A stretch of 64,000 nt of DNA, from positions 137,020,001 to 137,084,000 of the forward strand of contig NC_086102.1 of assembly GCF_963921235.1 (NCBI RefSeq), written 5' to 3'. The first letter of the stretch is position 1. The number at the start of each line of letters is the position of its first letter. Positions 9,523 to 62,659 of the stretch are shown here, piece by piece. The notes beneath the pieces are model-generated. The model did not search any database. It worked only from the letters and a program-made list of their open reading frames with translations, and was not told the DNA's origin. The translations under genes were made by a program, and so were the position numbers. This DNA comes from Mobula hypostoma. Its lineage: Eukaryota.

Positions 9523-12500
9523 TTAGTGATGGGATCTCAAGTCCTCATTTTGTTCCTGGAATGGGAAGATGAGCAGATTTGTAATCTTCAGCTGGACTGA
9601 ACTCACTCTGATGTCAATGTTTTCTCATTAGTTTTAATGATGATCATATCAGACACAAAGCTTCAGTTTATACTTACATTTGAAGGCTCCTCCGATGATA
9701 ATTCTGTTGACTTGCTTTTCATCTGTTTTACAAGATAAAATCAGATTTGCACATCAGTGATAGATCCACATCAAAAACTTTACAATCAATCTGAATCTCG
9801 GCAAAATATTAACATAATGAAATCAATTGCAAAGAATGTCATTATGTTGAAGAAGATGCAAACAAGAATTGTGAAGATATTACCAAGACTGGAGGGTTTG
9901 TTGTGTCAGAAAAGGCTGGATAGGTGAGGAGTTGATTCCCTGAAGTGCAAGAAAGTAGGTGAAGATGTAATAGTGGTTAATAAAACTTGGAGAGGAATAG
10001 ATAAGGCAAATAGGGTAGAGGAGTCTAAAGTGAGAGAACATAGATTTAAAGTGCAAGGGGAAGATTCAAAAGTGAGGTGAGGAGCAACTTTTTCAAACAG
10101 AGATGGTGGTTTAATGGCATGAACGGCCAGTAGAAATGTGAGATTTAAAATGCATTTGGACAGTCCATAGATAAAAAAACGATATTTAAGAGATATGGGC
10201 CAAATGTAGGAAACTTGTTCAGCACAGATGAATTGGACCAAGGACCAGCACCTGCATTGTATAGCTCGATGATTCTATTAATTTAAGAGGGGTGATTGAT
10301 TACTTCATTTGTTCTCGACTGTGCTGACATTGGGTGCTTAAGGTTGTTATAGGCGGGGGCTGTAGTTGGGATAGGCTCCCACTACCTATTAAATGCTCCC
10401 AATAGCATATATTTCAAATAACCTCTTGACAACCAAACCCAGCTCCAGGCCTTCACATGTACCTTAGCTACTAAGCCAATGGAACTGTTTCTACTGAAAG
10501 GAGGAGGGGCAAAGATGGTTTACTGGCGCTTTAAAACTAGTCGCTTCAGGCACATGGGGCTCATCAGCTGTGGTTAGCAGTTCATCTTGGAGAATGAATA
10601 CTCCGATCTCAAACCTCCACTGCTTTGCGTCTACAGCCACCCATGGGAATGGCTTTCAGAATAAACCACAAGGAAAGCTCTGGATCTGCAGTCCCTAAGG
10701 CAGTCCTATGTTGAGTTCAAAGCTGACTGGCAACTCCTGCAACACCACTGGTGCCAAACTGTATCAGTCTCCGTCGTCCTTTGGACTCATCAGCTATGTG
10801 GACAGGGTGAGCCTACGACATGGACAACAGCTTGCTCTCCATATCATACTGCCCTGGCTTGTGTGCCACATAGACAGCTGGGACACCACCTCCATGGTTG
10901 ACCGGACCGGTGGAAAGCCTCAGTGCTGGCATCTCCCTGCACCATACACTTCTATACTCAGGGCCAATAGTTATAGTGATTTAAATGAGGGGATCCTCCT
11001 TTCATGAAACTACCAGAAATATCAATCCACAGGCTATGATTGTCTGCAGGAGAGAGTGTCCTTCCAAATTCTATTTCAAAATTTCGTGAAGAACAAACTC
11101 AAACTCAGGCTAATGATGGGCATCTCCAGGACATGCACAGAGAATTTGTGCATTAATATGCCATCCTCTCCCTTCTCCAGGTAGTCATTAAATTATGTTT
11201 ACCCAGATTAGTTTTCATCGGTATATTATGGTTGAAAATCAATAGATGAAAATTCCAAGATTAGACTTACATCAGAAGACTCCTCGACTGATGTCTCATT
11301 TGACTTGCTCTCTACCTGCATGAAAAGATCAAAATTTATATGCTCAGCATGTTAATTTATGAAAGTTTGTGAAGTAACCTGAGAACAAGCCCTTTAAAGA
11401 TTTAATTATTTATAAACCTAGATATATCCCCTTTATTTATTTATTACCGCAGTGGAGAAATGCTCACCAGAACAACTAAATTTTGCAAAAATAATCATAT
11501 CACATAATGTGAGGTGTGACGGGTCTCTAGATAATTTGGGGAAAATGTCACTCTCACCCAATTAATTGGTATTGTTGTATTGAACCTGCTCTGCACCTTC
11601 ACTTGGTCTCTTTAATTGGTGAGTGTTACAGACATTGCCCTCATGTCTAGCACCCAATCTTGTTGCTATCCAGCTCGCTTTATCCTTGAGAGGAAGCAAA
11701 CTCACTTTCTGTTTTGGAGCCCCTCAGTCAAACTTCCCCTCAGGAATCAAACATCGCAATACCTATCTCAATAGACTGACCTAAAGAGAGCGGTGCAGAC
11801 TTGATGGCCAAATGGTCTTATTCTGCTCCTATATCTTATATTTTATGGTCTAAGTGGCCCTTTCTCCTCTACTCTGACATAGTTGAATGCAATATGTTTA
11901 ACATATTTACTTAGCGTCGAGATCAAAAAGATCATCAATTTTTTTTCCATTTATACTCACATCAGCTGAATCCTCAAGAGATGACTCTGTTGATTTGTCT
12001 TTTTCCTGTACGGAAATAATATTAATTTGTTTAGTACAAGACAGTGAGGAATTTTGAAAATATATAAACTGAAAAATTCCCAGTTTGCACAAGTATTAAA
12101 TATTGAAATATAATTCAGTCTTTGTTCACTCTGGGCATTTCAGCAGAAAATGCAGCAGGCCATTGGGAAGGCAAATTATCTTTATTGCAAGAGGACTTGA
12201 AAAGAAGAATACTACAATTGTATCGAACCCTGGTGAGGATTGTATGGTTTTGGTCGACTTATCTGAAGAAAGATATGTTTGAGACAGAGGATACAGCAAA
12301 GTTCTACAAGTATACTACCCATGAAGGTACATCTGCCACATGAGGAGAGATTAAGTGCGATAGACTCTACTCACTCCAGATTGGAAGAATGAGAGGTGAT
12401 ACCATGAGCAAAATTATGAGAGGTCTTGAATACTTATCAGGGAAAGGGTTTTCACCAATCCAAGGAGTTGAGACTTGGCTTACAGTCTCAAAATAAGAGC

Positions 12501-14967
12501 TTGGTCAATGAGGAATGAGGTGAAACTCAGATGGTGAATCTTTGGAATTCTCTACCCTGGAAAGCTGGGGAGCCTCATTCGCAAGTTCATCCAAAACAGG
12601 GTTGATGAATTGTTCGATTTTAAGGGAATCAGGGCTTACAGTGTTACGACAGGAAAATTGCTTTGAGGTAGAAGCTAATATTCAATATCCTCGCTGTCCT
12701 CTTTCACCCATTGTCTAGAACAGGCCTAGAATGAAGTAAGATCCTCAGACTCTATTCTGACAGATCAATCTAGGTTTCATATCTTATTGAGAAACCGGAT
12801 ATCAAATCCCAAATTAAACTTACGTTTGAAGATATTTCCAGTGAAGTTTCCTCTGAACTGCTTTTCACCTGTATAAAAACATGTACATGTATATCATTAG
12901 TACAAGGTATATTTAGTAAATCTAAAACAAATAATAGACCAGAATGTTGAATTATCAACGGAGAGTTATTAATCCTAACATTTCTGAATGATAATTCAAT
13001 GAATTAGTGTTAGATTGCAGAAGCTTCAATAAAAATTATCTCTATACTACACTGATGTACAAAAAAAATGTCAGGAGCAGAATGAATGGATATTCCTATA
13101 ACAGTTGCTGTAGGCATCATTGCCATCTGTTTTATTGAATCCATGGAAGGATTGGTACTTCATGAATCTCAGTGATGAGAGTTTGTCAGACACTTCTCCT
13201 GTAGTCCTGTTCTGCTGATGCTCAGCTCATCTTCAGTAGAGAACAAACCCATCATGCACTGAAATCTAATATTAGGATTCCCTCCCTACACATCAGACAA
13301 CAAAAAAAATCTGATAAATTACTGATTAATACTCACATCTGAGGTTTCCTCAAATGATTTTTCTTTTGATTTGCTTTGTGCCTGTAAGATAAAGATACTT
13401 ATTTTCAGATCTTCAGCATACATAAACAATGAAATCTTCAGTAAACAATCTTCTGTTAGAAATTCCATTGCCCTGAATTGTATGAATGCAGTTACCTCGA
13501 TACTGTTTTCATTTGATTCTGTTGAGTCACTCTCGCTGTCAACCGTCGTCAGACCGTCACACTCCACATCAACGTCAGCTACCTTATCAGCAAAAAATTC
13601 CACATGGCTTTTGCAGAACCCTTTCTCCTGTTAGAATGAAGCAGAATGTAAGGAAATTATTTATGATTCCAAGCAAGACACAAAATCAAAATGATTATGC
13701 TCTAACTTAATTCTTAGCCTTTACTTTGATATAACCACATATGTATGGCCATTTCTATCAAACAGGTTGTAATTAAAGTTTGTATTTTGTTGCTAATACA
13801 TACACGGACTTGCATGATCTAAGATATAACTCTGGACTCACCGCAATGTTTTTATGGCGGAAAGAGCAACTGGGATCATCAAATTCCTGTCCAGAATTCT
13901 TGGAGCAGACAGTTTCTTTCACGGAGAATGTTAAATCCACACTGTAGGACAGTTTACCCGTACGATATGTCTTAAGAAAGGGAAAAGGATAATTGGTGAA
14001 TTATTACTTCTGGTGTTTTTCCACTGGTCTGATAAAACTCAGAGTTACAGAGGCTTTAATTCCAGCAAATGGTTACAGTGGTAGCGTCTGAGCAGTCAAC
14101 CAAAATGAACAGGAGGATGACTTTGCCCAGTGGTAAAACTGTCACTTAAACCATCACAATAGGGATACTCAATTTTCATGAATCCATAATTATTGGAGGA
14201 AATTAACTAACAAATTTGGGAAACTTTCAGTGACTTCAAAATCAAAGATTGGCTGAACTTCCAAACTTAATTCCAAAGCTTTGGTCCAATCAAAGTTGCA
14301 CAACTCAAACACTGATGGAGAGTTAAAAAGCTGACCACTCTGTACACAATATAATATTCAGCTCCCGTTGAAGACTTAGATTCCATCTTATCTTAACATT
14401 TATCTCATACATTGAATTATGCAGCTTGAGGCCACTCAGCCCTTCAGGCATATACTGGCTCCCAGCTGACCCATCCCATCAATCCCACTCTCCCTCTCGT
14501 CAAATCCCCATAATGTTGCAACTTACTCTCTCTATCACAAACATCATCTCTCCTTTGATTTGTTTTTTGGTGTTAAACTACTCTTAGGGTAAGTTTAAGT
14601 AGACAGTTACCCTGCACTCAGACACATCAATAGTTTGTGAAACACAATCAGCCAAAGGCACACTTACATTTGTCACGCCTCTCCTGGAGATACCACAGAG
14701 GTTGGTGATCTCGGTGATTTCATTCAGCTTTATCACTGAGGCTCTCAGAGCTTCCTTGGTGCTTGGCACTCCTGTAGAGAGAGAGGGGAAGTCATACAAT
14801 ATGCATTCGAACAAACCTCTGTGAATTCTTCTCACACCTGGGTGAAATGTCGTTGCTTGAAGCTCAGTACCAACAACTTTCTGCTCTCTGATTTCCCACT
14901 CTCCCCAGTACTTACCTGAGCAGTAGAGGATCTGCACTGCAGCAATGGCAAGCAGGAAAGTTTTCAT
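9523..14967 (-). CDS. spp2: SPP2/SPP24-like secreted cystatin-domain phosphoprotein, copy A (10 coding exons, 224 aa, five 15-aa Ser/Glu mini-exon repeats)
   Basis: Hand-spliced exons, all AG/GT bounded and in frame: 14967-14916 MKTFLLAIAAVQILYCSG (signal peptide, phase 1); 14771-14668 VPSTKEALRASVIKLNEITEITNLCGISRRGVTN; 13970-13842 TYRTGKLSYSVDLTFSVKETVCSKNSGQEFDDPSCSFRHKNIA; 13627-13496 EKGFCKSHVEFFADKVADVDVECDGLTTVDSESDSTESNENSIE; 13381-13337 AQSKSKEKSFEETSD; 12868-12824 VKSSSEETSLEISSN; 12005-11961 EKDKSTESSLEDSAD; 11315-11271 VESKSNETSVEESSD; 9722-9678 MKSKSTELSSEEPSN; 9555-9523 EQNEDLRSHH*. From memory it resembles SPP24 (ALxASVxKxN, LxFSxxETxC, C-x17-C loop, then Ser-rich). The symbol denotes the family; orthology is untested. 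Confidence 0.88.
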
Positions 14968-15055
14968 TCTGGTTTGTGTGGAATCAGCTAGTTTCTCACA
15001 GTGAAGGAACTGCTTCTCTCTCTCTCGATCTGCCTTTACCACGCTGCCTTCAGTC

Positions 15056-15061
15056 TTTATA
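15056..15061 (-). promoter_or_regulatory. TATA box, copy A
   Basis: GGATATAAAG about 90 nt upstream of the ATG; conserved in all three copies. Confidence 0.75.
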
Positions 15062-15763
15062 TCCTGCACCTCCACCACATTCAAACACTAGCTCGTGTTT
15101 GCATTGCTTGCTGACCGTGGGCACCGGAACCAGATGAGAGGTGGGTCTAATTATGGGCAAGCTTCCTCCTAGTATCGTCATCATGTTTAGGTTTGGTGGG
15201 AAATTGAGTCAGTTCATGTTGCATTCCTTGGAATATGAAATAATAAATTTACAGAGGTGAAGAAACAATCTTCTCAAACTTGTACAAATTCAATTAACAC
15301 TTGCACTAAATTCCCTGATGATTTACCTACAGTGTACCAGGAATATGCTGGAAATACCAGCACACTGTTACAAGAAACCTTAGTGATAAATCCAAAGTAT
15401 GTTGAGAGAAGTCTTGTATGTTTTTCATGTTCTACCAACGTTTACAGTGATATTGATGACATTATTAGAGGTAAATGAGTTTTCTGAGCAGTTGGGAGAG
15501 TTTGTGTGATTGGATGATTGAAATATAGAAGGCAGAAAATAAAGAAATTAAAAGGGTTAACTCAACATTGTGGGCCAGAAGGCCTGTAATGTGCTCTAAT
15601 GTAATTTTGGAGACACAGTAGACTGCGGATGGTAGAAATCTAGACTACCATACAAAGGCATTGGAGAAACTCTGCAAGTCAGGCAGGATCTATGGTGGGA
15701 AATGGACAGGCAAGATTTTGGTTTAAGTCTCTCATCTGGGCTGGAAATAAAGAGGGGAGGTAG

Positions 15764-17230: not shown

Positions 17231-18940
17231 CCCAGTGCAGTCTCTGAGACAGTGATATAAGAATGTGTCGTTCTGTTCCATTCACTTAGTGTCAACAATA
17301 GCAATAGTGCAGTAAACACCTAATGTGTTGCTGGCCCTGTGTTCACATTTACCCCAGTATTAAAGCTCATAGATTTGAATCACAGGTCCTTGGGATAGTT
17401 TTGACCGTGGTCATACATTGATCTTCAATGTGCGGGGCATTTGCTCAAACCACTTTATGGCATTTTTGGGATTAGGAGATATGGCAAAATATTAAGTATT
17501 AACGTCAGCAGCTAACTGCTGCCACCAAGCTCCAGATCTGAATATGGACTGTAGATTAAACTTAAAATGCAGCTGTGGCCAATGGGTTTCAAAGAGCTGT
17601 GAACTGCAATTAATTAAAAAACCAGACTATGCTGATTTAACATTCATTTGGGTGTCTGTAGTGTGGGTACAAAGAAGGATGTGTGAACGATATATGCAAT
17701 TCAAAGGAAGTATTGTAGATACATCATAAATATAGAATTGTCCTTTGATCTTTAGCATATAAAATATCATGAAATGTTGGGTCGAGTAAATCTCTTCCTC
17801 CGAAAGGGTATCAACATGATGCCCTCTGTGTTTCATTTTGTTGAATAAAGACACTACTTCATATCCACCAGCTGCCTCTACACACATTGAGTTCATATTA
17901 TGGTAGCATTACTACAGATTAGTGTCTGAATAAAGGATCAACCCATTACAAAGATTTCGCTGCAATATGTTCTGATGACAGAAGCTAGTTAGTGACCCGA
18001 ATATGGGTACTTCACCCAGGGCTTTGTTTTTGGACTGTGTGTTGTTGACGGTGGTCATGAAAGCTGTGGTCAGGGTTCCTGGCTCCTGGGCTGCATACTG
18101 GTGTCAGAGTTCATGTGGGAGGAGAAGGGGAGAGTTAAAGAAAAAACACTAAATCAATTAGTGGAGGTAAACAGCTCAGGAAAAGGAAACAAGTCAACAT
18201 CTGCCTGGAAAACATGTGCCAATATTTGCATGAAAATATCAATCATATTTTGAACAGAATGAGGCTCTCATCTTTTCATCATAAAGACTTGCAAAATGTT
18301 TTAAAAGTAGGAAAATCTGAATCCAGTTATCTTGTGAGAAATCTATTTATCCCCAGTTTTTACAGGGCAGTACATTTAAGTTAACCCCTTTCATGCCAAA
18401 ATTCATTAGTTGTAGCCGGTGTTTCATCTTCATGTTGCTCATTGAAGCAAAGTTTCAGTCAATAACAAGGCCATAAGACCATAAGATATAGGAGCAGAAG
18501 TAGGCCATTTACCCCACTGAGTCTGCTCCATCATTCAATCATGAGCTGATCCAATTCTTCCAGTCATCCCCACTCCCCTGCCTTCTCCCCATACTCTTTG
18601 ATGCCCCGGCTAATCAAGAACCTATCTATCTCTGCCTTAAATACAAACGTTTGTACATCCAATGACTTGGCCTCCACAGCTGCTTGTGGCAACAAATTCC
18701 ACAGATTTACCACACTCTGACTAAAGTAATTTCTCTGCATCTCAGTTCTAAAAGGATGTCCTTCAATCCTGAAGTTGTGCACTCTTGTCCTAGAATCCCC
18801 TACCATGGGAAATAAATTTGCCATATCTAATCTGTTCAGGCCTTTTAACATTTGGAATTTTCTATGAGATCACTCCTCATTCTCCTGAACTCCAGAGAAT
18901 ACAGCTCAAGAGCTGCTAGACTTTCCTCATACAGTAACCC

Positions 18941-28946: not shown

Positions 28947-31900
28947 TTAGTGCTGGGCTCTCGAGTCCTCATTTTGTTCCTGGAATGGAAAGATGAACAA
29001 ATTTGTAATTTTCAGCTCGATGGAGCTCACTCTGATGTCAATATTTTGTCATTAGTTTTAATAATGATCACATCAGTCACAAAGCTTCAGTTTATACTTA
29101 CATTTGAACGTTCCTCCAGTGATAATTCCGTTGATTTGCTTTTCATCTGTTTTATGAGATAAAATCAGATTTGCACATCAGTGATAGATCCACATCAGAA
29201 ACTTCACAATCAATCTGAATTTCAGCAAAATATTAACGTAATGGGACTATAAGATTGAGTAATACAAAGTATGCCATTATCTTGGAGAAGATGAAAACAA
29301 GAATTATGAAGATATTACCAGTACTGGAGGGTTTGTGTTATAAGGAGAGGCTGGATAGGTGAGTTGATTCCCTGGAGTGCAAGAAAGTATGGGAAGATAA
29401 AATTATGGGGTGAAAAGATATGGCAAATAGCCAAAGTAATTTTTTTTAGAGTAGAGGAGTCTAAAATGAGAAAACATAGGTTTAAATTGCAAGGGAAAAA
29501 ATTCAAAAGTGATATGACGGGCAACTATTTCAAACAGAGATGGTGCGTTTATGGAATGAACAGTCAGTAGAATCGGTAGAGACAGGTTGAATTGTGACCT
29601 TTAAAATGCATTTGGACAGTTCCATAGATAAGAAAGATTTTTAAGTGATATGCCCTGGCTTAGTACTGGCTTGCATAACACACTTGAGGACCTTGAGGAC
29701 CTGAGGAGAGTAAGGTACCGGTGACCCCTGTTTCCATCCATGGGGTCAGTGTGGACATGGTGGAGGATTACAAATACCTGGGGATACGAATTGACAATAA
29801 ACTGGACTGGTCAAGGAACACTGAGGCTGTCTGCAAGAAGGGTCAGAGCCGTCTCTATTTCATAGAAGACTGAGGTCCTTTAACATCTGTCGGACGATGC
29901 TGAGGATGTTCTACGAGTCTGCGGTGGCCAATGCTATCATGTTTGCTGTTGTGTGCTGGGGCAGCAGGCTGAGGGTGGCAGACACCAACAGAATCAATAA
30001 ACTCATCCATAAGGCCAGTGATGTTGTGGGGATGGAACTGGACTCTCTCACGGTGATGTCTGAAAAGAGGATGCTGTCTAAGTTGCATGCCATCTTGGAC
30101 AATGTCTCCCATCCACTACATAATGTACTGGGTGGGCACAGGAGTACATTCAGCCAGAGATTCATTCCACCAAGATGCAGCACAGAGCATCATAGGAAGT
30201 CATTCCTGCCTGTGGCCATCAAACTTTACAACTCCTCCCTTGGAGGGTCAGACACCCTGAGCCAATAGGCTGGTCCTGGACTTATTTCATAATTTACTGG
30301 CATAATTTACATACTACTATTTAACTATTTATGGTTTTATTACTATTTATTATTTATGGTGCAACTTTAACGAAAACCAATTTGCCCCGGGAGCAATACA
30401 GTATGACTATGACTATGACTATGACACAGACAGCTGGGACACAACTTCCGTGTTCAACCTGACCAACGAAGGTCTCAGTGCTGATATCTACACCATACAC
30501 TTCAGCTCATAGTTATAATCAATTAAATGTGAGAAATGTTATGGATCCCCCATTCATGAAACTACCAGAAATATCAATCCACAGACCATGATTGTCCCCA
30601 GGAGAGAGTGTCCTTCTAAATTCTATTTCAAAATTTAGAGAAGAACAAACTCACACTCAGGCTAATGATGGGCATCCTCAGGACATGCACAGAGAATTTG
30701 TGCATTAATATGCTATTCTCTCCCTGATCTCTGTAGTCATTTAACTATGTTTGCCCAAATTAGGTTTTATCTGTATATTATGGTTGAAAATCAATAGATG
30801 AAATTTCTTAGACTTACATCAGAAGACTCCTCGACCGATGTCTCATTTGACTTGCTCTCTACCTGCATGAAAAGATCAATATTTATATGCTCAGCATGTT
30901 AATTAATGAAAGTTTGTGAAGTAACCTGAGAACAAAACTAGAAATATCTTGATTTTTAATTTATTACTGCAGTGGAGAAGTCCTCGCCAGGAGAATTACA
31001 TTCCGTATAATGATCAACATAGCCGGGAAAATATGAGGTGTGGGGTGTCTGGAGATGAATTGGGGAAAATGTCACTCTCACCCAATTAATTGGCATTGCA
31101 TGTATTGAAGCTGCTCTGCACCATCACTTGGACTCTGTAATTGGTGAGTGTTAGAGACTTTGCCCTCACTCCTAGCACCCAATCCAGCTCACTTTATCCT
31201 TGAGGGGAAGCAAACTCATTCTCTATATTGGAACCCCTCAGTCAAACTTCCCAACAGGAATCAAACAACATATTCCCTTTCTCAATGCACTGACCTAACG
31301 TTAGTGGAGCAGATTCAATGGGAAAAATGGCATAATTCTTCTCCTTTGTCTCGTATCTTATGGTCTAAATTGCCCTCTCTCCTTGTATTCTGACAAGGCC
31401 GAATTGAATATGTTTAACGTATTTACTTAGCGACGAGGTCAAAAAGATCATCTGAATTTTTTTAGTTATACTCACATCAGCTGAGTCTTCAAGAGATGTC
31501 TCTTTTGATTTGTCCTTTTCCTGTATGAAAATAATATTTATATGTTTAGTACAAGACAGTGAAGAATTTTGATGATATATAAACTGAAAAATCACCAGTT
31601 TGCACAATTATTAAATATTGAAATATAATGTAGACTTCGTTCACTCTGGGCATTTCAGCAGCAAATGCAGCAGGCCATTAGGAAAGCAGATTATTTTTAT
31701 AGCAAGAGGACTTGAAAAGAAGAGTACTACAATTGTATCGAGCCCAGTGAGGGTTGTGTAATTCTGGTTGCTTATCTGAAGAAGGATATGCTTGAGACAG
31801 AGGATATAGCAAAGTTATACTAGTATAGTGCCCATGAACGTGGATCTGTCACATGAGGAGAGATTAAGTATGATAGACTATTCATTACAGATAGGAAGAA

Positions 31901-34900
31901 TGAGATGTGATTGCATAACCATAAGCAAAATTGTGAGAGGGTTTGATTGGATATCGGGGAAGGGTTTTCACCTGTCTAAGGAGATGAGAGCTTGGCTCAT
32001 AGTCTCAATATAAGAGCTTGGTCAATGAGGAATGAGGTGAAACTCAGATGGTGAATCTTTGGAATTTACTACCCCCAAAGAGCTGTGGAGGCTCAATTGA
32101 AAGTTCATTCAAAACAGAGATTGGTGAATTGTAGAATATTAAGGGAATCAAGGCTTACAGTTTTATTATAGGAAAATGGTTTGAGGTGGGCACTAGCTAA
32201 TATTCAATATTCTCTCTCAACCCCGCTGTCTGGAACAGGGCAAGAATTAATTAAGATCCCTAGACTCTATTCTGACAGATCAATCTAGGTTTCACATCTT
32301 ATTGAGAAACTGAAGATATCAACTCCCAAATTAGACTTATATTTGAAAACAATTCCAGTGAAGTTTCTTCTGATTTGCTTTTTGCCTATATAAAATATGT
32401 ACATTTATAGCATTAGTACGAGGTATATTTAGTAAATCTAAAGCACTATCACCGAATAATAGACCAGAATGCTGAATTATGAATGGAGCTATTAATCCTG
32501 ACATTTCTGAATGATAATCCCATGAACTAGCGTTAGATTGCAGAAGCTTCAATAAAAATTCTCTCTATACTACACTGATACTCAAAAAAAATGTCAGGAA
32601 CAGATTGAATGGATATTCTGACAATAGGTGAAACAGGCATCGTTACCATTTGTTTTATTGAATCCATGGAAGGATTGGTACTTAATGACTCTCAGTGGTG
32701 AGAGTTTGTCATACACTTCTCTTGTAGTTCTCTTCTGCCGATGCTCAGTTCATCTTCAACAGAGAACAAACTCCTCATGCACTGAAACCTAATATTATGA
32801 TCCCCTCCCTACACATCAGACTGGGACAAGACCACAGACCACAACATCATAATACATAGGAGCAGTATTAGGCCATCTAGCCTATCGAGTGTGCTCCGCC
32901 ATTCAATCATGGCTGATCTTTTTTTCTATCTCCTTCTCAACCCCAGTTCCCGGCCTTCTCCCCGTACCCTTTGATGCCACATCCAATCAATAACCTATCA
33001 ATCTCTGCCTTAAATACACCCAACGACCTGGCCTCCACAGCTGCAAGTGGCAACAAATTCCACAATTTCACCACACTTTGGCTAAAGAAATTTTTCCTCA
33101 TCTGCTTTGAAAGGGCGCCCCTCTATCCTGAGGCTGTGCACTCTTGTCCTAGACTCTCCCACCAAGGGAGCCATCCTTTCCACATCTTCTCTGTCTAAGC
33201 TTTTCAATATTCGAAAGGTTTCAATGAGATCCTCCTTCATCCTTCTGAATTCCAGCGACTGCTGGTATAACCCTTTCATTCCTGGAATCATCCTTGTGAA
33301 CCTCCTCTGGACCCTCTCCAATGCCAGCACATCTTTTTTAAGATGAGGGGCCCAAAACCTTTCACAATCGTCAAGGTGAGGCCTCACCAGTGCCTAATAA
33401 AGCCTCAGCATCAAAACCTTGCTCCTTTATTCTAAACCTCTTGAAATGAATGCTAACATGGCATTGGCCTTCCTCACCACCAACTCAACCTGCAAGTTAA
33501 CCTTAAGAGTGGACTCCCAAGGACTCCCAAGTCCCTCTGCAACTCATATTCCTGGATTTTCTCCTCGTTTAGAAAATAGCCCACACATTTATTTCTACTA
33601 CCAAAGTGCATGACCATGCATTTTCCAACATTGTATTTCATTTGCCACTTTCTTGCCCATTCTCCTAATCTGTCTAAGTCCTTCTGCTTCCTACCTGTTT
33701 CCTCAACATTACCTGCCCCCCACTAATCTTTCTATCATCTGCAAACTTGTCAACAAAGCCATCTATTTCATCATCTAAATCATTTATATACAGCATAAAA
33801 AGAAATAGTCCCAACACCGACCTCTGCGGAACACCACTAGTCACTGGCAGCCAACCAGAAAAGGACCCTTTTATTCCCACTTGCAGCCTCCTTCTAATCA
33901 GCCAATGCTCTAACCATGTTTGTAACTTTCCTGTAGTACCATGGGCTCTTAATTTGGTAAGCAGCCTCATGTGTGGCACCTTGTCAAAGACCTTCTGAAA
34001 GTCCGAATGCACAAAATTCCCTTTATCTATCCTACTTGTAATCTCTTCAAAGAATTCTAACAGGTTCACCAGGCAGGATTTTCCATGAAGGAAACCATGC
34101 TGACTTTATATTATCTTGTCCTGTGTCACCAAGTACTCCACCTCGTCCTTAACAACTAACTCTAACATCTTCCCAACCACTGAGATCAATCTAACTGGTC
34201 TATACTTTCCTTTCTGCTGCTTTCCTCCTTTCTTAAAGAGTGGAATAACATTTGCAATTTTCCAGTCCTCTGGCACCATGCCAGAGTCCAATAATTTTTG
34301 AAAGATCATTTCTAATGCCACCACAATCTCTAACGCAACCTCTTTCAGAACCCTAGGGTGCAGTTCATCTGGTCCAGGTGACTTATGTACCTTTAGGTTT
34401 TCCAGCTTTTTGAGCACCTTCTCTCTTGTAACAGTAACTGCACCCACTTCTCTTCCTTCACACACTACATTATCAGGCATACTGCTGGTGTCTTCCACAG
34501 TAAAGACTGACGCAAAATACTCATTCAGTTCAGCAGCCATCTCCTTGTTCCCCGTTATTATTTCTCCTGCCTCATTTTCTAGCAATCCTGTATCCATTCT
34601 CATTTCTCCTTTATTTTTAACTCGAAAAATCTTTTACTGTCCACTTTGATATTACTTGCTAGCTTGCTTTCATATTTCATCTTTTCCCTTCTAATGATTT
34701 TTATAGTTGCTTTCTGTAAGTTTTTAAAAACTTCCCAATCCTCTATCTTCTGACTAATTTTTGCTTTGTTGTATGCCCTTTCATTTGCTTTTATAATAGC
34801 TTTGAACTCCCATGTCAGCTACGGTTATACTATTTTACAATGTGCGTATTTCTTCATTTTTGGAATACACATGTCCTGCACCTTCCTCATTTTTCCCAGA

Positions 34901-37364
34901 AACGCACACCATTGTGATTCTACTGACATCTCTGCCAGCAGCTCCTTCCAATTTACTTTTGCCAACTTCTCTCTCATACCACTATAATTTCCCTTACTCC
35001 ACTGAAATACTGCTACATCACACTTCACTTTCTCATTATCAAATTTCAAGTTGAACACAATCATATTGTGATCACTGGTTCCTAAGGGTTCTTTTATATT
35101 AACCTCCCTACTCGCCTCCAGTTCATTACATAACACCCAATCCAGTATAGCTGATCCCCTAGGAGGCTCAACAACAAACTGCTCTAAAAAGCTATCTCTT
35201 AGGCATTCAACAGACTCACTCCCCTGAGATCCATTACTAACCTGATTTTCCCAATCAACCTGTATGTCAAAATCTTCCATGACTACCATAACATGCTGTC
35301 TCACCCACTATTCCTAATGGAGAACTTAAAATTTCATTGCGAAGAATTTTAATCATTTCATCGTGAACAATTGAGTGCAACAAGAAAAAAATCTGATAAA
35401 TTACTGATTAATACTCACATCTGAGGTTCCTTCAAGTGATGTTTCTTTTGATTTGGGTTGCGCCTGTAAGATAAAGATATTTATTTTTAGATCTTCAGCA
35501 TACATAAACAATGAAATGTTCAGTAAAGGATCTTCTGTTAGAAATTCCATTGCCCTGAATTGTATGAATGCAGTTACCTCAATACTGTTTTCATTTGTTT
35601 CTGTTGAGTCACTCTCGCTGTCAGCTGTCGTCAGACCGTCACACTCCACTTCAACGTCAGCTACCTTATCAGCAAAAAATTCTACATGGCTTTTGCAAAA
35701 CCCTTTCTCCTGTTAGAATGAAACATAATGTAAGGAAATTATTCATGATTCCAAGCAAGACAATAAATCAACATGATTATGATCTAACTCAATTCTTAGC
35801 CTTTCCTTTATTATAACTACATATGTATGTATGGTCATTTCTATGAAATGGGTTGTAATTAAAGCCTGTATTTTGATGTTAAAACATACAAGGACTTGCA
35901 TGATCTAATATAACTCTGGACTCACCGCAATGTTTTTATGGCGGAAGGAGCAGCTGGGATCATCAAATTCCTGTCCAGAATTCTTGGAGCAGACAGTTTC
36001 TTTCACGGAAAACGTTAAAACCATGCTGTAGGACAGTTTACCCGTACGATATGTCTTAAGAAAGGAAAAGAGATCATTGGTGAATTGTTATGTCTGGTAT
36101 TCTTCTACGGGTCTGAGAAAATGCAGAGTTACAGGGGGTCTACTTCCAGCCGATGGTTTCACTGGTCATGTCTGAGTTTTTTTTTTGTACGTCACATCCG
36201 GAGTTTCTCCGGTTAGCAGACAATTTCCATCCACGTCTCTCTGACGTAGCGGGGAACCGCGTACGAGGCAAGTTACAGCAATGGTTTGCCATTGCCTTCT
36301 GCCGGGTGAGTTTCCAAAGAGATCACCAGCTCCTAACCCAGCGCGGATAGAAAGCGTGCAGAGGAGCCGGCTGGAGCTGGATTCGAACTCAGAACCTTCC
36401 GTCCTGAAGTCCGATGCTGATGCCACTACGCCACTAGCCAGGTCATGCCTGAGTAATCAACCAAAATGGATAAGAGAATTACTTTGCCCAATGGTAAAAC
36501 TGTCACTTAAACCATCATGATAGGGATATTCAGTTTGCATGAATTCGTAATTATTGAAGGAAATTAACTGACAAATTTGAGAAAATTTTCAGTGACTTGC
36601 AAATCAAAGACTGGTAGAACATCCAACCTTAATTCTGAAACTCTGGTCCAATCAAATTTCCACAACTCAAACACTGATTGAGAACTAAATTGCTGAACAC
36701 TCTGTACATAATATGAAATTCAGCTCCTGTTGAATACCTAGATTCTATCTTATCTTAAAATGTATCTCACAATTAGTTTTATGCAGTTTGTGGCCAGTCA
36801 GCCCTTCAGGCTTATACTGGCTCCCAGCTGACCAATCCCATCAATCCCACTCTCCCTCTCATCAAATCCCCATAATGTTGCAATTTATTCTCCTTATCAC
36901 AAAACATTATCTCTCCTTCCAGCATCTGCAGAATTCCTCGTGTTTACTCTCCTTTGATCTGTTTTTTGCTGTTAAACTATTCTTAGGGTAGGTTTAAGTA
37001 GACAATTACCCTGCACTCAGACATATCCATAGTTTGTGAAACACAATTAGCCAAAGGCACACTTACATTTGCTACGCCTCTCCTGGTGATACCACAGAGG
37101 TTGGTGATCTCGGTGATTTCATTCAGCTTTATTACTGAAGCTCTCAGAGCTTCCTTGGTGCTTGGCACTCCTGCAGAGAGAGAGGGGAAGTCATACAAGG
37201 TATCCCAAAAAATCTCTGTGAATTCTTCTCACACCTGGGTGAAATGTTGCTGATTGAACTTCAGTACAAACAATTATCTGCTCTCTGATTTTCCTTTCTC
37301 CCCAATACTTACCTGAGCAGTAGAGGATCTGCACAGCAGTGATGGCAAGCAAGAAAGTTTTCAT
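28947..37364 (-). CDS. spp2: SPP2/SPP24-like secreted phosphoprotein, copy B (9 usable coding exons, ~209 aa)
   Basis: Exons 37364-37313 MKTFLLAITAVQILYCSG; 37170-37067; 36054-35926 TYRTGKLSYSMVLTFSVKETVCSKNSGQEFDDPSCSFRHKNIA; 35709-35578; 35463-35419 AQPKSKETSLEGTSD; 31520-31476 EKDKSKETSLEDSAD; 30862-30818 VESKSNETSVEESSD; 29146-29102 MKSKSTELSLEERSN; 28979-28947 EQNEDSRAQH*. All open with canonical sites. The exon-6 homolog has a dead donor. Confidence 0.86.
29700..30425 (+). mobile_element. Rex1/Babar-like LINE 3' fragment in an intron of copy B
   Basis: YKYLG..IDNKLDW and MLRMFYESAVANAIMFAVVCWG...SFLPVAIKLYN motifs; (GACTAT)n tail. Confidence 0.8.
32341..32385 (-). pseudogene. Splice-dead mini-exon 6 of copy B (AKSKSEETSLELFSN)
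   Basis: Homologous to 12868-12824. The TAG acceptor is intact but the donor reads ATAAGT instead of GTAAGT at 32340. Confidence 0.8.
32829..35290 (-). mobile_element. CR1-like LINE in intron 5 of copy B
   Basis: Endonuclease/RT fragments (SDHNMI, KSPGPDELHPRVLKE, SGVPQRSVLG, KFADD); empty site ctgggacacatgctg at about 60928 in copy C. Confidence 0.88.
36178..36440 (-). mobile_element. tRNA-derived SINE with RTE-like 3' end in intron 2 of copy B
   Basis: A box TGGCGTAGTGG, B box GAGTTCGAATCC, poly-A tail, 14-bp TSD ggtcatg(t/c)ctgagt at 36164 and 36441. Confidence 0.8.
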
Positions 37365-39258: not shown

Positions 39259-39308
<50 letters not shown>

Positions 39309-51200: not shown

Positions 51201-51894
51201 GAAATTTTTTCAAGAGTTAAATAAATCTGTGAAGAAAATTTCTTTGGAAAGGTAAAATGTCAAGAATATCATTGGAAAAACTGACATGTAAATTTAGGTT
51301 AGGAGGGTTACAACTTCCAAACTTTAAAAATTACTATAAAGCAAATCAACTTAGATTTATTGCATCTTTTTTCGATGATCAAAAACCAGCATGGATTAAA
51401 ATAGAACTAGACAAGATAGGAGAAAATAAACCTGAAGATTTTATATATAAATAGGAATCTAAATGGATACGGGAAAAGAAAGAATCTCCTATATTAACAC
51501 ACTTGATTGATCTATGGAATAAGATAAATGTTGATAAGGAAACACAGAAATCTCTATTAGCAAGGAGACTTTTGTTTCAAAACAGACTTATTCCTTTTAC
51601 AATGGACAATCAACTTTTATATAATTGGTACCAAAAAGGGATTAAATTTATAGGAGATTGTTTTGAGCGAGGTATATTGATGTCATTTGAACAATTAAAG
51701 GATAAATATAATATATCTAATAATACTTTCTTTTGCTACTTTCAGTTAAGGGCTTACTTAATAGGTAAGCTGGGTCAAACAATGTTTTTGCCAAAAGCTA
51801 ATGAAATTGAAATTTTAATTCAAAAAGGGAAAATTAAAAAAATTATTTCTTGTATGTATAATTTGATTCAAGAACAGACAATTAAACAAGGAAC

Positions 51895-57035: not shown

Positions 57036-57049
57036 TTTATTACTTTATT
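57036..57049 (-). terminator. Tandem AATAAA polyadenylation signals, copy C
   Basis: Homologous doublet. Confidence 0.7.
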
Positions 57050-57266: not shown

Positions 57267-60200
57267 TCAGTGCAGGGCTCTAGAGTCCTCATTTTGTTCC
57301 TGGAATGGAAAGATGAACAGATTTGTAATTTTCAGCTCAACTGAGCTCACTCTAACATCAATGTTCTGTCATTAATTTTAATGATGATCACATCAGACAC
57401 AAAGCTTTAGTTTATACTTACGTTTGAAGGCTCCTCCAGTGATATTTCTGTTGACTTGCTTTTCATCTGTTTTACGAGAAGAAATTTTGCATTTTAGAAC
57501 GTTTCCAGATGCACAGTTTAATGAGATTTAGTTTCTAAATTATTAAGTAGAACCACTTTAAAATCAGAATTGCACAGCACTGAGAGATTCATATCATACA
57601 ATCAGTCTGAATTTCAGCAAAATATTAACATAATAAGACTCTAAGATAGTTTATTACAAAGGACGTCATCATCTTGGAGAAGGTGCCAACAAAAATTGTA
57701 AGTGTATTACTTGTACTGCAGGGGTTGTGTTATAAGGAGAGGCTGTGTAGGTGAGGTGTTGTTTCCATGGAGTGCAAGAAAGTAGGGGAAGACATAAAAG
57801 AGGTTTACAAAATTATGAGGTGAATAGATAAGGCAAATAGCCATATTTTCCACAGGGGAAGTCTAAAATTAGAGAGTATAATTTTAAATTGAAAGGGGAA
57901 AGATTCAGAAGTGATCTGAGGGGCAACTTTTTCAAGCAGAGATGGTGGGTTTATGGAATGAACTGCCAGTCAAATTGGTGGAGTTGGGTACATATATGAC
58001 ATTTAAAATGCATTTGGATGATTCCATGAATAGGAACATTTTTAAGAGATGTAGGCAAAATGGGATTACATTACGTAAGCAACTTGGTCAGCACAGATGA
58101 ATTGGTTGAGAGGACCTGTTTCTGCATTGTACAACTCTATGACTCTATTAATCTAAGACAGATGATTTATTCCTTCAGTGGGTCATGATGTGCTGACATC
58201 GGTTCTTTACGATTGTTATAGCTGGAGGTGGTAATAGGGATAAGCTCCCTCTACCTATTAAATGCCACCAATGGTGTGTATCTCAAATAGTTCTGGCAAC
58301 CAAGTCAAGATCCTGGCCTTCATGCGTGCCTTAGCTACTAAGCCTGGTTGAACAGTTTCTACTGACGGGAGAAAGTGCGAAGGTGGTTTACTGGTGCCTT
58401 GAAATAAGTCCTTTGGGCAGATGGGGCACCTCAGCCATGCTTTCCTTCTTGGAGAAGGAAATCTCTGATCTCAACCTCCGCTGCTTTGTGGTTATAGCGG
58501 CTCACATGATAGGGTGCGGGAATAAACCACAAGGAAAACTTTGGAGCAGCAGTCCCTAAGGAAATCCTATATTGATTTCAAAGCTGACTGGCAACTCCTC
58601 TGACACCAGTGGTGCCAATCTGTAACAGTCTCTGCCGTCCTTTTGATTCATCAACTGCGTGAGGAGGATGAGCAACAGTTTGCTCTCCATATCATTCTGC
58701 CCTGCCTTGTGCACTGGCTTGCTTAACAAATGCAATGGATTCTCCTTTCATGAAAACACTAGTTATGTCTTCCCACAAACCAGGATTGACCCCAGGTGAG
58801 AGTGCCCTTTCAAATTCTATTTCAAACTAAAGTGAAGAACAAACTCACACTCAGGGTGAAGTTGGTCATCCTCAGGAAATGAATAGAGAATACTTTAGAG
58901 AATTTGTGCATTAATGTGCTATCCTCTCCCTGCTCTAGGTAGTCATTTAATCATGTTTGCCCAACTATGGTTTCACCATGTATTATGATTGAAAATCAAT
59001 AGATAAAAATTCCATTGATTAGACTTACATTGGAAGACTCCTCATTTGATGTCTCTTTTGATTTGCTCTCTACCTACATGAAAAGAATCAAAATTTATAT
59101 GCTTAGCATGTTAATCAATGAAAATTTGTCAAGTAACCTTTGAACAAAACCTTTAATGATTTAATTACATGTAAACCTACATTTATCATGATTTGTGCTT
59201 CAGTATTGCAGTGGAGAAGTGTTCCTCAGAACAATTACATTCTGTACAATGATCAACATCGCCTGGATAATGTGAGGTGTGGGGGTTAGTATATTATTTG
59301 GGTAACAATATCACTCACACTCAATTAATTGGCATTGGATATATTGAAGCTGCTCTGCACCAACTCTTGGTCTCTGTAATTGGTGATTGTTACAGACATC
59401 ACCCTCATGTCTAGTACCCAATCTTCTTGATATCCAGCTCACTTTATCCTTGAGGGAAAGCAAACTCATTCTCTGTATTGGAACCCCTCAGTCAAACTTC
59501 CCCATAGGAATCAAACATCACAATACCTTTCCCAATGCACCAACGTATCTTATATCTTATTCTCTAAATGGCCCACTCTCTTTCTATTCTGACATAGTTG
59601 AATCTAAGATGTTTAACATATTTACATAGCGTCAAGGTCAAAAAGATCATCTGATTTTTTTTTTCCATTTATACTTACATCAGCTGAATCCTCAAGAGAT
59701 GTCTCATTTGATTTGCCTTTTTCCTGTATGGAAATAATATTTATATGTTTACCACAGGACACTGATGAATTTTGAAAATACATGAACTGAAAAATTCCTG
59801 CTTGGACAAGTATTAAATATTGAATTATCATGGAGTTTTTGTTCTCTCTGGGCATTTCAGCAACAAATGCAGCAGGCCATTGGGAAGGCATATTGACTTT
59901 ATTGCAGGAGGATTTGAAAAGAGGGATACTAAAATTGTAGTGATCCCTGTATTGTGTAGTTTTGGTCTGCTCTCTGAAAATGGATCTGCATGAGGTAGTG
60001 GATACAGCAATGGTATATTTTCCTGGAAAGATGCATATGCCACATAAGAAGAGGATGAATTGTGTTGGATAATTTGGATAATCATTACAGGTTAAAACAA
60101 TGAGGGGTTATTGCCTGACCATGAGCAAAATTATGAGAGGGTTTGATTGGTAATGTAGGTATGTTTCTGCCAGTCGAAGCATTGAGAGCTTGGCTCATGT

Positions 60201-62659
60201 CTCAAACTAGGTGCTTGTCCAATGAGGAATGAGGTGAAACTCAAATGGTGAATCTTTGAAATTCACTGTCCCCAGAGAGCTGTGAAGGCTCAATCATGAG
60301 TTCATTCAAAACAGGGATTGGTGGATTGTTGGATATTAAGGGAAACAAGACTTACAGTTTTACTATAGAAAAATGGTTTGAGGTGGGATCTAGCGAATAT
60401 TCAATATTCTCTGTCTTCTCACCCCCACTGTCTGGAACAGGCCAAGAATGAATTAAGATTCTCATACTCTATTCTGACAGATCAATCTAGGTTTCACATC
60501 TTATTGAGAAATTGAAGATACCAGAAAACATTCCCAGCAATTAACAGACCAGAATACTGAATTACGAATGAAGAGCTATTAATCATGACATTTCGGAATG
60601 ATGTTCCCATTACTTAGCATTAGATTGCAGGGGCTTCAATAAAAAGACTACCCCCAATACTACATTGATATTCAAAAAAAGTGCTTGGCTACAGTAAACA
60701 CCTGGAGCAGAGTGAATAGATGTTCCTACAATAGATGGCACAGGCACCATGCCATCTGCTTTATTGAATCCATGGAAGGAATGGTACTTCGTGAATCTCA
60801 GTGATGAGAGTTTGTCAGACACTTCTCCTGTAGTCCTGTTCTGCTGATGCTCAGCTCATCTTCAGCAGAGAACAAACTCATCATGCACTGAAATCTAATA
60901 TTAGAATCCCCTCCTTACACATCAGACTGGGACACATGCTGTCTCATCCACTATTCCTAATGGAGAGCTTAACATTTCATTGCAAACAATTATAATCACC
61001 TCATCATGAACAATTGAGATCAACAAGATAAAATCTGATAAATTACTGATTAATACTCACATTTGAGGTTTCCTCAGGCGATGTTTCTTTTGATTTGCTT
61101 TGTCCCTGTAAGATAAAGATATTTATTTTTAGATCTTCAGCATACATAAACAATGAAATGTTCGGTAAAGGATCTTATGCTAGAAATTCCATTGTCCTGA
61201 ATTGTATGAATGCAGTTACCTCAATACTGTTTTCACTTGTTTCTGTTGAGTCACTCTCGCTGTCAACTGTCGACAGACCGTCACACTCCACTTCGACATC
61301 AGCTACCTTATCAGCAAGAAATTCCACATGGCTTTTGCAAAACCCTTTCTCCTGTTGGAATGAAGCATAATGCATGGAAATCATTCCTTATTGCAAGCAA
61401 GACACAAAACCAACATGATTATGATCTAACTCAACCAATGTGACCTAGCCTTTGCTTTGATATAACTGCATATGTATGGTCATTTACATGAAAAAGGTTG
61501 TAATTAAAGCCCGTGTTTTGATGCTACGACACACACGGACTTGCATGATCTAAGATATAACTCTGGACTCACCGCAATGTTTTTAGGGCGGAAGAAACAG
61601 CTGGGATCATCAAATTCCTGTCCAGAATTCTTGGAGCAGATAGTTTCTTTCACGGAGAATGTTAAATCTACATTGTACGACAGTTTACCTGTACGATATG
61701 TCTGAAGAAAGGAAACAAGATTATTGGTGAACTATTATGTCTGGTGTTCTTACAGTGATTGATAAAACTTAGAGTTACACAGGGCTTTATTTCCAGCAGA
61801 TGATAACATGGATAGTGTCTGAGCAATCAACCAAAATGGACAATGCATTTAATTTTCCCAATGATAAGATTACCATTTAAACCATCATGAATAGGGATAC
61901 ATAGCTGCATAGTTTTCAGGAACGCTTAATTATTGGAGGTAATTAGTAAACAAAATTGGGAAAGCATTCAAATCAAAGACTGGTTGAACTTCCAAACTTA
62001 TTTCCAAAGCTTTGGTCTAATCAAAGTACCACAACTGAAATACTGATGGAGAGTTAAATAGCAGACCACTCTGTACATAATATAATAGTTAGCTCCTGTC
62101 GAACACTTAAGACTTCATCTTATCTTAAAATATATCTCTTACTTAGAATTATGCAGTTTGAGGCCACTCAGCCCTTCAGGCCTATACTGGCTCCCAACAA
62201 ACCAATCCAACCAATCCCATTCCCCCTTCGTCAAATCCCCATGATGTAGCAACTTATTTTCACTATCACAAACATATCTCTCCGTTAATTTGTTTTTTGC
62301 TGTTAAACTACTCAGACTTATCCATAGTTTGTGAAACACAATCAGCCAAAGGCACACTTACATTTGTCACGCCTCTCCTGGTGATACCACAGAGGTTGGT
62401 GATCTCCGTGATTTCATTCAGCTTTATAACTGAAGCTCTCAGAGCTTCCTTGGTGCTTGGCACTCCTGCAGAAAGAGAGGGAAAGTCATACAAGGCATCC
62501 CAACAAAACTCTGTGAATTCTTCTCACACCTGGGTGAAATATCGCTGACTGAAGCTCAGTACCAACAACTTTCTGCTCTCTGATTTTCCGCTCTCCCCAG
62601 TACTTACCTGAGCAGTAGAGGATCTGCACTGCAAAGATGGAAAGCAGGAACGTTTTCAT
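57267..62659 (-). CDS. spp2: SPP2/SPP24-like secreted phosphoprotein, copy C (9 coding exons, ~209 aa)
   Basis: Exons 62659-62608 MKTFLLSIFAVQILYCSG; 62465-62362; 61701-61573 TYRTGKLSYNVDLTFSVKETICSKNSGQEFDDPSCFFRPKNIA; 61351-61220; 61105-61061 GQSKSKETSPEETSN; 59723-59679 EKGKSNETSLEDSAD; 59073-59029 VESKSKETSNEESSN; 57466-57422 MKSKSTEISLEEPSN; 57299-57267 EQNEDSRALH*. The exon-6 homolog is deleted near 60520-60545. Confidence 0.86.

Follow-up and report, generated by a model that had tools for sequence, protein, structure and literature searches.

The window analysed here, a stretch of 64,000 nucleotides, lies within the tandem array of spp2 genes (secreted phosphoprotein 24) that the lesser devil ray, Mobula hypostoma, carries on chromosome 6, and it contains three intact spp2-type genes on the minus strand: copy A at 9523-14967, copy B at 28947-37364, and copy C at 57267-62659 (paralogues LOC134347648/Mhy7648, LOC134348762/Mhy8762, and LOC134348763/Mhy8763). 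Judged from the gene models, the C-terminal tail of their products is modular, in that one 45-nt phase-0 exon would encode one 15-residue unit with two S-x-E motifs, S5-x-E7 and S9-x-E11. Taken as a whole, the data are very probably best explained by spp2.3-type paralogues with a modular S-x-E tail acting locally in mineralising cartilage. The Spp2 expansion, including these three genes, is already known; what seems to be undescribed is solely how the tail is built from mini-exons.

The three genes follow a common plan, in which four exons for the signal peptide and the cystatin domain are followed by four to five exons of exactly 45 nt and a short last exon. The model of copy A comprises 10 exons, five of them of 45 nt, and encodes 224 amino acids; after splicing, it yields exactly the Mobula hypostoma protein XP_062906091.1, annotated as "secreted phosphoprotein 24-like." For copies B and C, the models predict 209 amino acids from nine exons each, four of which are 45-nt exons, and that of copy B would require skipping of an exon with a broken donor. 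AG/GT sites are present at all junctions, the reading frame is unbroken in all three models, and intron 1 is of phase 1, while every subsequent intron is of phase 0. An earlier, sequence-only reading had proposed exactly such intact secreted genes, tandem paralogues in which a cystatin domain precedes an S-x-E (Fam20C-type) tail with one unit per 45-nt phase-0 exon, and this description holds. Its count of four to five mini-exons per gene also stands, but it overlooked a fifth exon in B, whose donor is AT, and the deleted homologue of this exon in C.

A proximal promoter block, which contains the TATA box of copy A, is conserved among the three copies; GGATATAAAGA, located approximately 90 nt upstream of the ATG, is unchanged in all of them. 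The 3' UTR of copy A extends to about position 9290, with AATAAA at 9301-9306. The features of copy A are as follows.

15056..15061, minus strand: TATA box in the conserved proximal promoter block (GGATATAAAGA invariant in A, B, and C)
14916..14967, minus strand: exon 1, 52 nt, ATG and predicted signal peptide, phase-1 end (product identical to XP_062906091.1)
14668..14771, minus strand: exon 2, 104 nt, start of the cystatin-like domain (transcript contigs link 14668 to 13970)
13842..13970, minus strand: exon 3, 129 nt, cystatin-like core with Cys74 and Cys87 (Pfam Spp-24; joint 13841/13626 in 3 runs)
13496..13627, minus strand: exon 4, 132 nt, Cys100-x17-Cys118 loop and ancestral Ser-rich stretch (gene model, family alignment)
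13337..13381, minus strand: mini-exon u1, 45 nt, phase 0-0 (mini-exon scan; transcript joint 13336/12865)
12824..12868, minus strand: mini-exon u2, 45 nt, with the sole SSSEE (mini-exon scan; transcript joints)
11961..12005, minus strand: mini-exon u3, 45 nt (mini-exon scan; transcript joints 12005/12836 and 11965/11315)
11271..11315, minus strand: mini-exon u4, 45 nt (mini-exon scan; transcript joints)
9678..9722, minus strand: mini-exon u5, 45 nt (mini-exon scan; transcript joints 9722/11274 and 9681/9555)
9523..9555, minus strand: last coding exon, 33 nt including the TAA stop (transcript contigs span 9293-9555)

The corresponding features of copies B and C are as follows.

37313..37364, minus strand: B exon 1 (gene model)
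37067..37170, minus strand: B exon 2 (gene model)
35926..36054, minus strand: B exon 3 (gene model)
35578..35709, minus strand: B exon 4 (gene model)
35419..35463, minus strand: B mini-exon u1 (gene model, unit comparison)
32341..32385, minus strand: B u2 homologue, open 45 nt with AG acceptor, donor AT instead of GT (gene model, unit comparison)
31476..31520, minus strand: B mini-exon u3 (gene model, unit comparison)
30818..30862, minus strand: B mini-exon u4 (mini-exon scan, unit comparison)
29102..29146, minus strand: B mini-exon u5 (mini-exon scan, unit comparison)
28947..28979, minus strand: B last coding exon and stop (gene model)
62608..62659, minus strand: C exon 1 (gene model)
62362..62465, minus strand: C exon 2 (gene model)
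61573..61701, minus strand: C exon 3 (gene model; 100% to P0004)
61220..61351, minus strand: C exon 4, donor read through in XP_062908635.1, where the NCBI model ends (gene model)
61061..61105, minus strand: C mini-exon u1 (mini-exon scan, unit comparison)
59679..59723, minus strand: C mini-exon u3, the u2 homologue being deleted (gene model)
59029..59073, minus strand: C mini-exon u4 (mini-exon scan, unit comparison)
57422..57466, minus strand: C mini-exon u5 (mini-exon scan, unit comparison)
57267..57299, minus strand: C last coding exon and stop (gene model)

A search of the whole window for further Spp2 exons or copies yielded none beyond A, B, and C, and the window contains spp2 copies and transposons only. 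Other matches in the window are fragments resembling the odd C terminus of one Hypanus model, which lie inside a repeated intergenic unit. Conserved synteny (sh3bp4/arl4c/nme9/vps8/cops8) has been reported for M. hypostoma chromosome 6 (PMC13188829).

The mini-exon scan required an AG, 45 open nucleotides with a Ser-rich translation, and a GT; the matches lie on the minus strand. The strict pattern ....S.E.S.E.... was found in 13 exons versus 0.02 expected from 100 dinucleotide-model random sequences (maximum, 1), and all 13 of the 15-residue units share S5, E7, S9, and E11 without exception. The last 107 residues of copy A contain 17 S-x-E motifs, and SSSEE occurs once, both in exact agreement with the earlier count; copies B and C feature 12 S-x-E motifs each. 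The casein-like SSSEE cluster emphasised before is thus present a single time, in copy A, and in neither B nor C. For the tail of copy A, the net charge is -14 and the pI 4.4; it includes a single Arg and lacks the Arg-rich C-terminal region of SPP2, which is found mainly in spp2.1 (PMC13188829). Just past the fourth cysteine, exon 4 ends in a stretch rich in S, E, and D that is kept in A, B, and C and throughout the family. dN/dS values range from 0.14 to 0.24 for the cystatin exons and from 0.21 to 0.66 for the tail. The number of units is altered without a frame break by exon duplication, by exon loss (donor mutation in B, deletion in C), and by exon skipping.

Splicing of the mini-exons is supported by transcript contigs, which were compared with the copy A locus only and join mini-exons at the predicted GT..AG sites, as the sequence-only reading had anticipated. 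Note that these contigs are mostly just 90-95% alike to the locus and derive from paralogues or related species, so that they document splicing of this type of gene rather than expression of A, B, and C themselves. Within the introns of copy A, contig depth is zero, except for repeat-covered bins and traces in three other bins.

The assignment to SPP2, proposed earlier, was confirmed by profiles and phylogeny. Specifically, Pfam PF07448 (Spp-24; cut-off, 26) scores 41.0 bits for copy A and 40.6 and 38.6 bits for the B and C models, respectively, and exon 3 of copy A alone reaches 26.6 bits (E value of 6.8e-6). The cysteines C74, C87, C100, and C118 are invariant across 52 family members. AlphaFold predicts a confident cystatin/cathelin fold for residues 21 to 120, with a helix and four strands (pLDDT ≥94), preceded by a hydrophobic N-terminal helix comprising residues 3 to 15 in the predicted signal peptide region; for the tail, pLDDT values of 42 to 58 in 10-residue blocks signify disorder. 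Among solved structures, the model is most similar to the cathelin-like domain 4eyc (TM score of 0.78), cystatins, and fetuin-B, with which the sequence profile concurs. In a quick tree with bony-vertebrate SPP2 as the outgroup, the three genes fall into a multi-copy batoid clade (SH-aLRT of 98) within a chondrichthyan clade (97), separate from an Arg-tailed clade (99). Based on copy number and tree position, the clade of A, B, and C most likely corresponds to the published multi-copy spp2.3 group. The Q-x-V-x-G inhibitory-wedge motif of type-2 cystatins was found in none of the three translated proteins when read by eye, and a type-2 inhibitory cystatin was therefore rejected. Likewise, SCPP membership was rejected, since a cystatin-fold Spp-24 domain is present, intron 1 is of phase 1, and only the tail introns are of phase 0.

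In the proposed mechanism, each gene would encode a signal peptide, a four-cysteine cystatin/cathelin-fold domain, and a disordered, strongly acidic tail, in which the Golgi kinase Fam20C would phosphorylate the serines of the S-x-E motifs. Once poly-phosphorylated, the tail may bind calcium phosphate or apatite, and the Spp2 paralogues would have their effect locally, in the matrix of mineralising (tessellated) cartilage. Such a local role agrees with data for the catshark and the thornback ray, whose orthologues are expressed in Meckel's cartilage and mineralising chondrocytes (PMC13188829). According to the same study, heavy phosphorylation could also inhibit, not promote, mineralisation.

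The sequence-only reading had also considered a role in plasma or uterine milk, i.e., a casein-like circulating or secreted calcium-phosphate carrier produced in the liver or uterine trophonemata for plasma or histotroph. Mammalian Spp2 is carried in fetuin-mineral particles, and Mobula is a histotrophic, live-bearing ray; both facts would suit such a carrier, as would the disordered acidic tail rich in S-x-E and the one SSSEE of copy A. This role found no support and is very unlikely, as catshark spp2 paralogues are expressed in neither liver nor blood, with spp2.2/2.3 copies high in mineralising cartilage (PMC13188829), and SSSEE is missing from B and C. Moreover, the same tails are present in egg-laying skates and catsharks, so that histotrophy is not what they evolved for; a search of the literature turned up no paper connecting histotroph and Spp2. 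Still less probable, to the point of being hardly credible, is a cathelicidin-type host-defence precursor whose cathelin-like pro-domain frees a C-terminal peptide. Although the closest solved structure is the cathelin-like domain of human cathelicidin and Pfam Cathelicidins (PF00666) matches weakly with 19.3 bits, this score lies below the cut-off of 21, whereas Spp-24 is far above its own; with a tail that is acidic (-14) instead of cationic and a tree that groups the genes with SPP2, cathelicidin identity was rejected.

A different question concerns copies B and C, whose NCBI models, XP_062908634.1 (182 amino acids) and XP_062908635.1 (153 amino acids), both end in intron read-through, that of B running through the u2 homologue into the intron before it stops. 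These terminations, the broken donor of one copy B mini-exon, and the model of the M. birostris orthologue of B, which has three units only, would be compatible with B and C being decaying duplicates with truncated products only, so that the full phospho-tail would come from copy A alone. We consider this unlikely, however, given that the downstream mini-exons of B and C are all still open in frame, with their AG/GT sites and invariant S-x-E skeleton preserved, and that the tail dN/dS for B versus C is 0.21. Furthermore, the exon 4 donor of copy C equals that of copy A over GAG/GTAACTGCATTCATA, and the donor of A is spliced in the NCBI model equal to the copy A product. The predicted models of B and C presented here are fuller than the shortened NCBI ones and apparently undescribed. 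Shortened reference models of two genes lead to too few S-x-E motifs being counted in comparative analyses; in PMC13188829, B and C are represented by the shortened models.

The 15-residue units are present in every shark and ray sampled, and one unit is left in Callorhinchus (elephant shark); outside Mobula, the exon structure was deduced only from NCBI isoforms that differ in steps of 15 residues and from translations of read-through that begin directly after a unit. The repeat-tail innovation is old and chondrichthyan-wide. Because it is shared by all sharks and rays sampled, with one unit in the elephant shark, it is not specific to the devil-ray lineage, and the earlier claim that "this lineage independently evolved" it was too narrow. 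On balance, we lean towards the view that the phospho-tail is a modular cassette system undescribed at the exon level, in which each symmetric 45-nt exon is a two-site Fam20C module; duplication, loss, and skipping would adjust how many phosphate sites the different paralogues and isoforms carry, and the architecture would have converged on that of SCPP/casein genes from a cystatin-fold ancestor. Since one canonical unit persists in Callorhinchus, the cassette would be no younger than the last ancestor that sharks, rays, and chimaeras share.

The SCPP family, on which bony vertebrates depend, plays little or no part when cartilaginous fishes mineralise their cartilage. An expanded Spp2 set with Fam20C-type tails is therefore a strong candidate for their mineral-handling toolkit, which is now a published point: the tandem spp2 expansion, the accumulation of S-x-E, and the link to Fam20C in cartilaginous fishes were reported in April 2026 (Debiais-Thibaud et al., BMC Biol 2026, PMC13188829), with Mhy7648, Mhy8762, and Mhy8763 in the gene table and alignments. 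The possible novelty of the family raised by the sequence-only reading is thereby lost, as expansion, S-x-E motifs, Fam20C, cartilage expression, and these very genes are covered there; that reading had itself named a prior description of the repeat tail as evidence against it, and PMC13188829 supplies one. Its premise that chondrichthyans lack SCPP is also outdated (PMC9122587). Exons are mentioned neither in the text nor in the supplements of PMC13188829, and apparently undescribed are the modules formed by symmetric 45-nt exons, their invariant two-site unit, and the variation of tail length by loss and skipping of exons. The exon-level view adds a mechanism, with frame-neutral 45-nt modules allowing fast shifts in tail length and phosphate valency among paralogues and isoforms. 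The same modular-exon principle is thought to lie behind the diversification of SCPP and caseins, which therefore makes this a clean case of convergent gene architecture.

Among known systems, the chondrichthyan spp2.3 genes (PMC13188829) are the same genes, tandemly duplicated and characterised by a cystatin-like domain, numerous S-x-E motifs, and putative Fam20C sites; added here are the 45-nt symmetric modules with their invariant two-site unit, the loss and skipping of exons, and the one unit left in Callorhinchus. Bony-vertebrate SPP2/spp24 (PF07448), which is produced mainly in the liver (PMC13188829), shares the signal peptide, the four-cysteine cystatin-like domain, the C-x17-C loop, and the Ser/Glu-rich stretch. 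It differs in being single-copy and in having a basic, Arg-rich tail without a run of S-x-E units and, as previously stated and confirmed by our comparison, only one short Ser cluster (SSSxSxSSEE). In mammalian SPP2, too, the Ser-rich exon would be followed by short in-frame exons, as implied by a Pteropus isoform that lacks exactly 17 residues; for bony-vertebrate SPP2, isoforms point to short phase-0 exons of 54 and 51 nt. Cathelicidins share the cathelin/cystatin fold (TM score of 0.78 to 4eyc), but the Mobula tail is acidic and repetitive rather than a cationic peptide. Fetuin-A and -B share a cystatin-fold domain, with a marginal sequence match (E value of 0.026), yet possess two cystatin domains and another C-terminal domain; fetuin-A is phosphorylated by Fam20C and binds mineral (PMC13188829). 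As in SCPP genes and caseins, the products are secreted, disordered, and acidic with S-x-E Fam20C motifs, and the genes form tandem arrays with short phase-0 exons that are duplicated or skipped, whereas their origin is a cystatin-fold SPP2 gene and not SPARC-L, the N-terminal domain is folded, intron 1 is of phase 1, and the casein SSSEE cluster occurs a single time in the Mobula set, in copy A. The SCPP family, including caseins, is linked to calcium-phosphate handling, and the Mobula spp2 genes are an analogue, not a member, of this family.

A scan of both strands for AG, 45 open nucleotides and GT with a Ser-rich translation recovered the mini-exons reported for the three Spp2 genes, copies A (9523-14967), B (28947-37364) and C (57267-62659), in every case on the minus strand. 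Thirteen such exons fit the pattern ....S.E.S.E...., against 0.02 expected by chance, and with the intact gene models this confirms that the mini-exon tails are real. Self-comparison of the window resolved three duplicated units, each about 20-28 kb long, with positions 1-5500 representing the upstream region of a fourth. The main features of the genes are as follows.

Copy A exon 1, 52 nt, minus strand: signal peptide, phase 1 at its end
Copy A exons 2-4, 104, 129 and 132 nt, minus strand: cystatin-like domain and Ser-rich stretch
Copy A mini-exons u1-u5, 45 nt each, minus strand: phase-0 introns on either side
Copy A last exon, 33 nt, minus strand: includes the TAA stop
15056-15061, 37453 region and 62748 region, minus strand: TATA box GGATATAAAGA of the proximal promoter, about 90 nt upstream of each ATG

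The copy A model is identical to XP_062906091.1 over all 224 residues and thus equals the NCBI model; it shares 97.3% identity with a Mobula birostris protein. When its exons were mapped to the other two units, intact models of 209 amino acids resulted for B and C; both have four mini-exons, and all their junctions are AG/GT. Copy B carries an additional, fifth 45-nt exon with an AT donor, the homologue of which is deleted in copy C. The NCBI models of B (XP_062908634.1, 182 aa) and C (XP_062908635.1, 153 aa) terminate in intron read-through and lack the intact downstream mini-exons; the fuller predicted models are new here. The promoter with its TATA box is nearly invariant among the three copies. 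The little-skate model P0036 contains this stretch in translation, as a false N-terminal extension (ECGGGAGYKD), so the promoter seems to have been conserved in skates as well as in devil rays.

In copy A, 17 S-x-E motifs fall within the final 107 residues and SSSEE occurs once, which reproduces the hand count of the sequence-only reading; B and C have 12 S-x-E apiece and no SSSEE. Numbered within the 15-residue unit, S5, E7, S9 and E11 occur in every one of the 13 functional units and K4 in 12 of them, which places two canonical S-x-E sites in every unit. Pairwise dN/dS was 0.14-0.24 for the cystatin exons versus 0.21-0.66 for the tail, i.e., the tail evolves faster yet is still constrained. 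The copy A tail has a pI of 4.4 and a net charge of -14.

Exon 3 of copy A alone matched Pfam Spp-24, and the whole protein scored 41 bits (cut-off, 26). A word-based protein search with the open frame across exons 1 and 2 gave 57 matches, all from rays, skates or sharks and named "secreted phosphoprotein 24(-like)", bar a few "uncharacterized protein". AlphaFold2, run with an alignment of 52 sequences, predicted a confident cystatin fold for residues 21-120 (a helix and four strands, pLDDT at least 94); the tail blocks averaged 42-58 and are presumably disordered. The closest solved folds were those of the human cathelicidin cathelin-like domain (TM 0.78), of cystatins and of fetuin-B, in accord with the sequence profile. 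Four cysteines are invariant family-wide, and the inhibitory cystatin motif Q-x-V-x-G is absent from copies A, B and C. With the Pfam Cathelicidins profile, copy A scored under the family cut-off.

Transcript contigs from four RNA runs were aligned to 9250-15100. Minus-strand GT..AG joints lay at the predicted boundaries of exons 2-3, u1-u2, u2-u3, u3-u4, u4-u5 and u5-last, and of exons 3-4 in three runs; none of the joints listed was exon 1-2 or exon 4-u1. Two skipping forms joined u4 to the last exon and u4 to u2. Intron depth was zero except in dispersed-repeat bins, with traces in three other bins. Most contigs show just 90-95% similarity and so stem from paralogues or relatives; they demonstrate splicing of this gene type, not expression of copy A itself. 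In one run from a related organism, 56% of sampled words of the copy A 3' UTR were present. The stretches 10230-11013 and 11798-11993 within copy A introns showed very high depth and many loose ends in all four runs; these are dispersed repeats outside the gene's transcript.

Transposons lie between the copies.

18941-23121, ORFs on minus strand: LTR retrotransposon between A and B
21303-22946, minus strand: its ORF with DUF7041 domain, aspartyl protease and start of RT
19119-21299, minus strand: its ORF with remainder of RT, RNase H and integrase
47208-51255, plus strand: LINE-1-like element between B and C
47208-48245, plus strand: its ORF1, L1 dsRBD-like domain
48703-51252, plus strand: its ORF2, endonuclease and reverse transcriptase

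The LTR element, bounded by 195-bp direct repeats (18941-19135 and 22927-23121, 96.9% identity), accounts for the GC-rich stretch of the window. In copy B, the intron from u1 to the broken u2 measures about 3 kb versus 468 nt in copy A. Its positions 32836-35259 are 72-75% similar to intergenic DNA adjoining the LTR element (18468-18898 and 23121-25110), and the added sequence contains RT-like ORFs, so that it looks like a transposon insertion.

The sequence-only reading had proposed independent evolution of a casein/SCPP analogue in this lineage. The feature stands, the restriction to one lineage does not: these 15-residue units make up the paralogue tails in all sampled batoids and sharks, including catshark and sevengill shark, with successive units exactly 15 residues apart in 115 cases. 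For skate and stingray genes, one NCBI isoform differs from another in whole 15-residue steps, and in several shark models "VS..." immediately past a unit marks an intron at that position. Callorhinchus milii XP_007905871.1 (P0121) has a distinct short ESRE-type repeat (ESREDHSRDI-like) and retains one canonical unit and a terminal ...SRAR motif beside the C-terminus, so that both repeat systems arose on one ancestral scaffold; this trace of the unit is new here. At the sequence level the feature is thus chondrichthyan-wide. A quick maximum-likelihood tree, with bony-vertebrate SPP2 as the root, places copies A, B and C within a batoid multi-copy clade (SH-aLRT 98). One-to-one orthologues of copy A exist in M. 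birostris and Hypanus, which dates the split of A from B/C to before those species.

The Spp2 feature, these three exact genes included, is already published (Debiais-Thibaud et al., BMC Biol 2026, PMC13188829). In bony vertebrates, that work finds a single spp2 copy; in cartilaginous fishes, it finds a tandem expansion at the conserved locus into the clades spp2.1, 2.2, 2.3 and Like. It also describes a build-up of S-x-E motifs, interpreted as Fam20C sites, in the duplicates, and places expression of catshark spp2.2 and spp2.3 in mineralising chondrocytes, with none in liver. It tabulates the M. hypostoma chromosome 6 genes Mhy7648 (XP_062906091.1), Mhy8762 (XP_062908634.1) and Mhy8763 (XP_062908635.1), and its alignments use the truncated B and C models. 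"Exon" and "casein" are absent from its main text, "exon" also from its supplements. Added here are the exon-level architecture, the invariant two-site unit and the origin of tail-length variation in exon loss and exon skipping.

The feature is biologically meaningful and the earlier interpretation largely correct. Its assumption of no SCPPs in chondrichthyans is out of date, given the scpp genes already reported for elasmobranchs by Leurs et al. (2022, PMC9122587); roles in uterine milk or as a plasma carrier found no support. Homology and published expression data suggest that in Mobula the tail may be phosphorylated by Fam20C, would then bind mineral and could act in tessellated cartilage.

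Sharks and rays also have a single-copy Spp2 paralogue (P0033, P0049, P0051, P0052, P0057, P0103, P0106, P0108, P0110-P0112 and P0116) with a cathelin-like fold and a short, strongly cationic C-terminus, e.g., ...VYKRVKQVKRIVG. It is probably the published spp2.1, which is expressed in gill and taste-bud epithelium (PMC13188829). Its domain plan is that of cathelicidin antimicrobial precursors, and a role in host defence is conceivable. Bony-vertebrate SPP2 (bat, platypus, dunnart, tailed frog and notothenioid) has only a single SSSxSxSSEE cluster; one bat isoform is short by exactly 17 residues, which suggests that the mammalian tail, too, has short in-frame exons.
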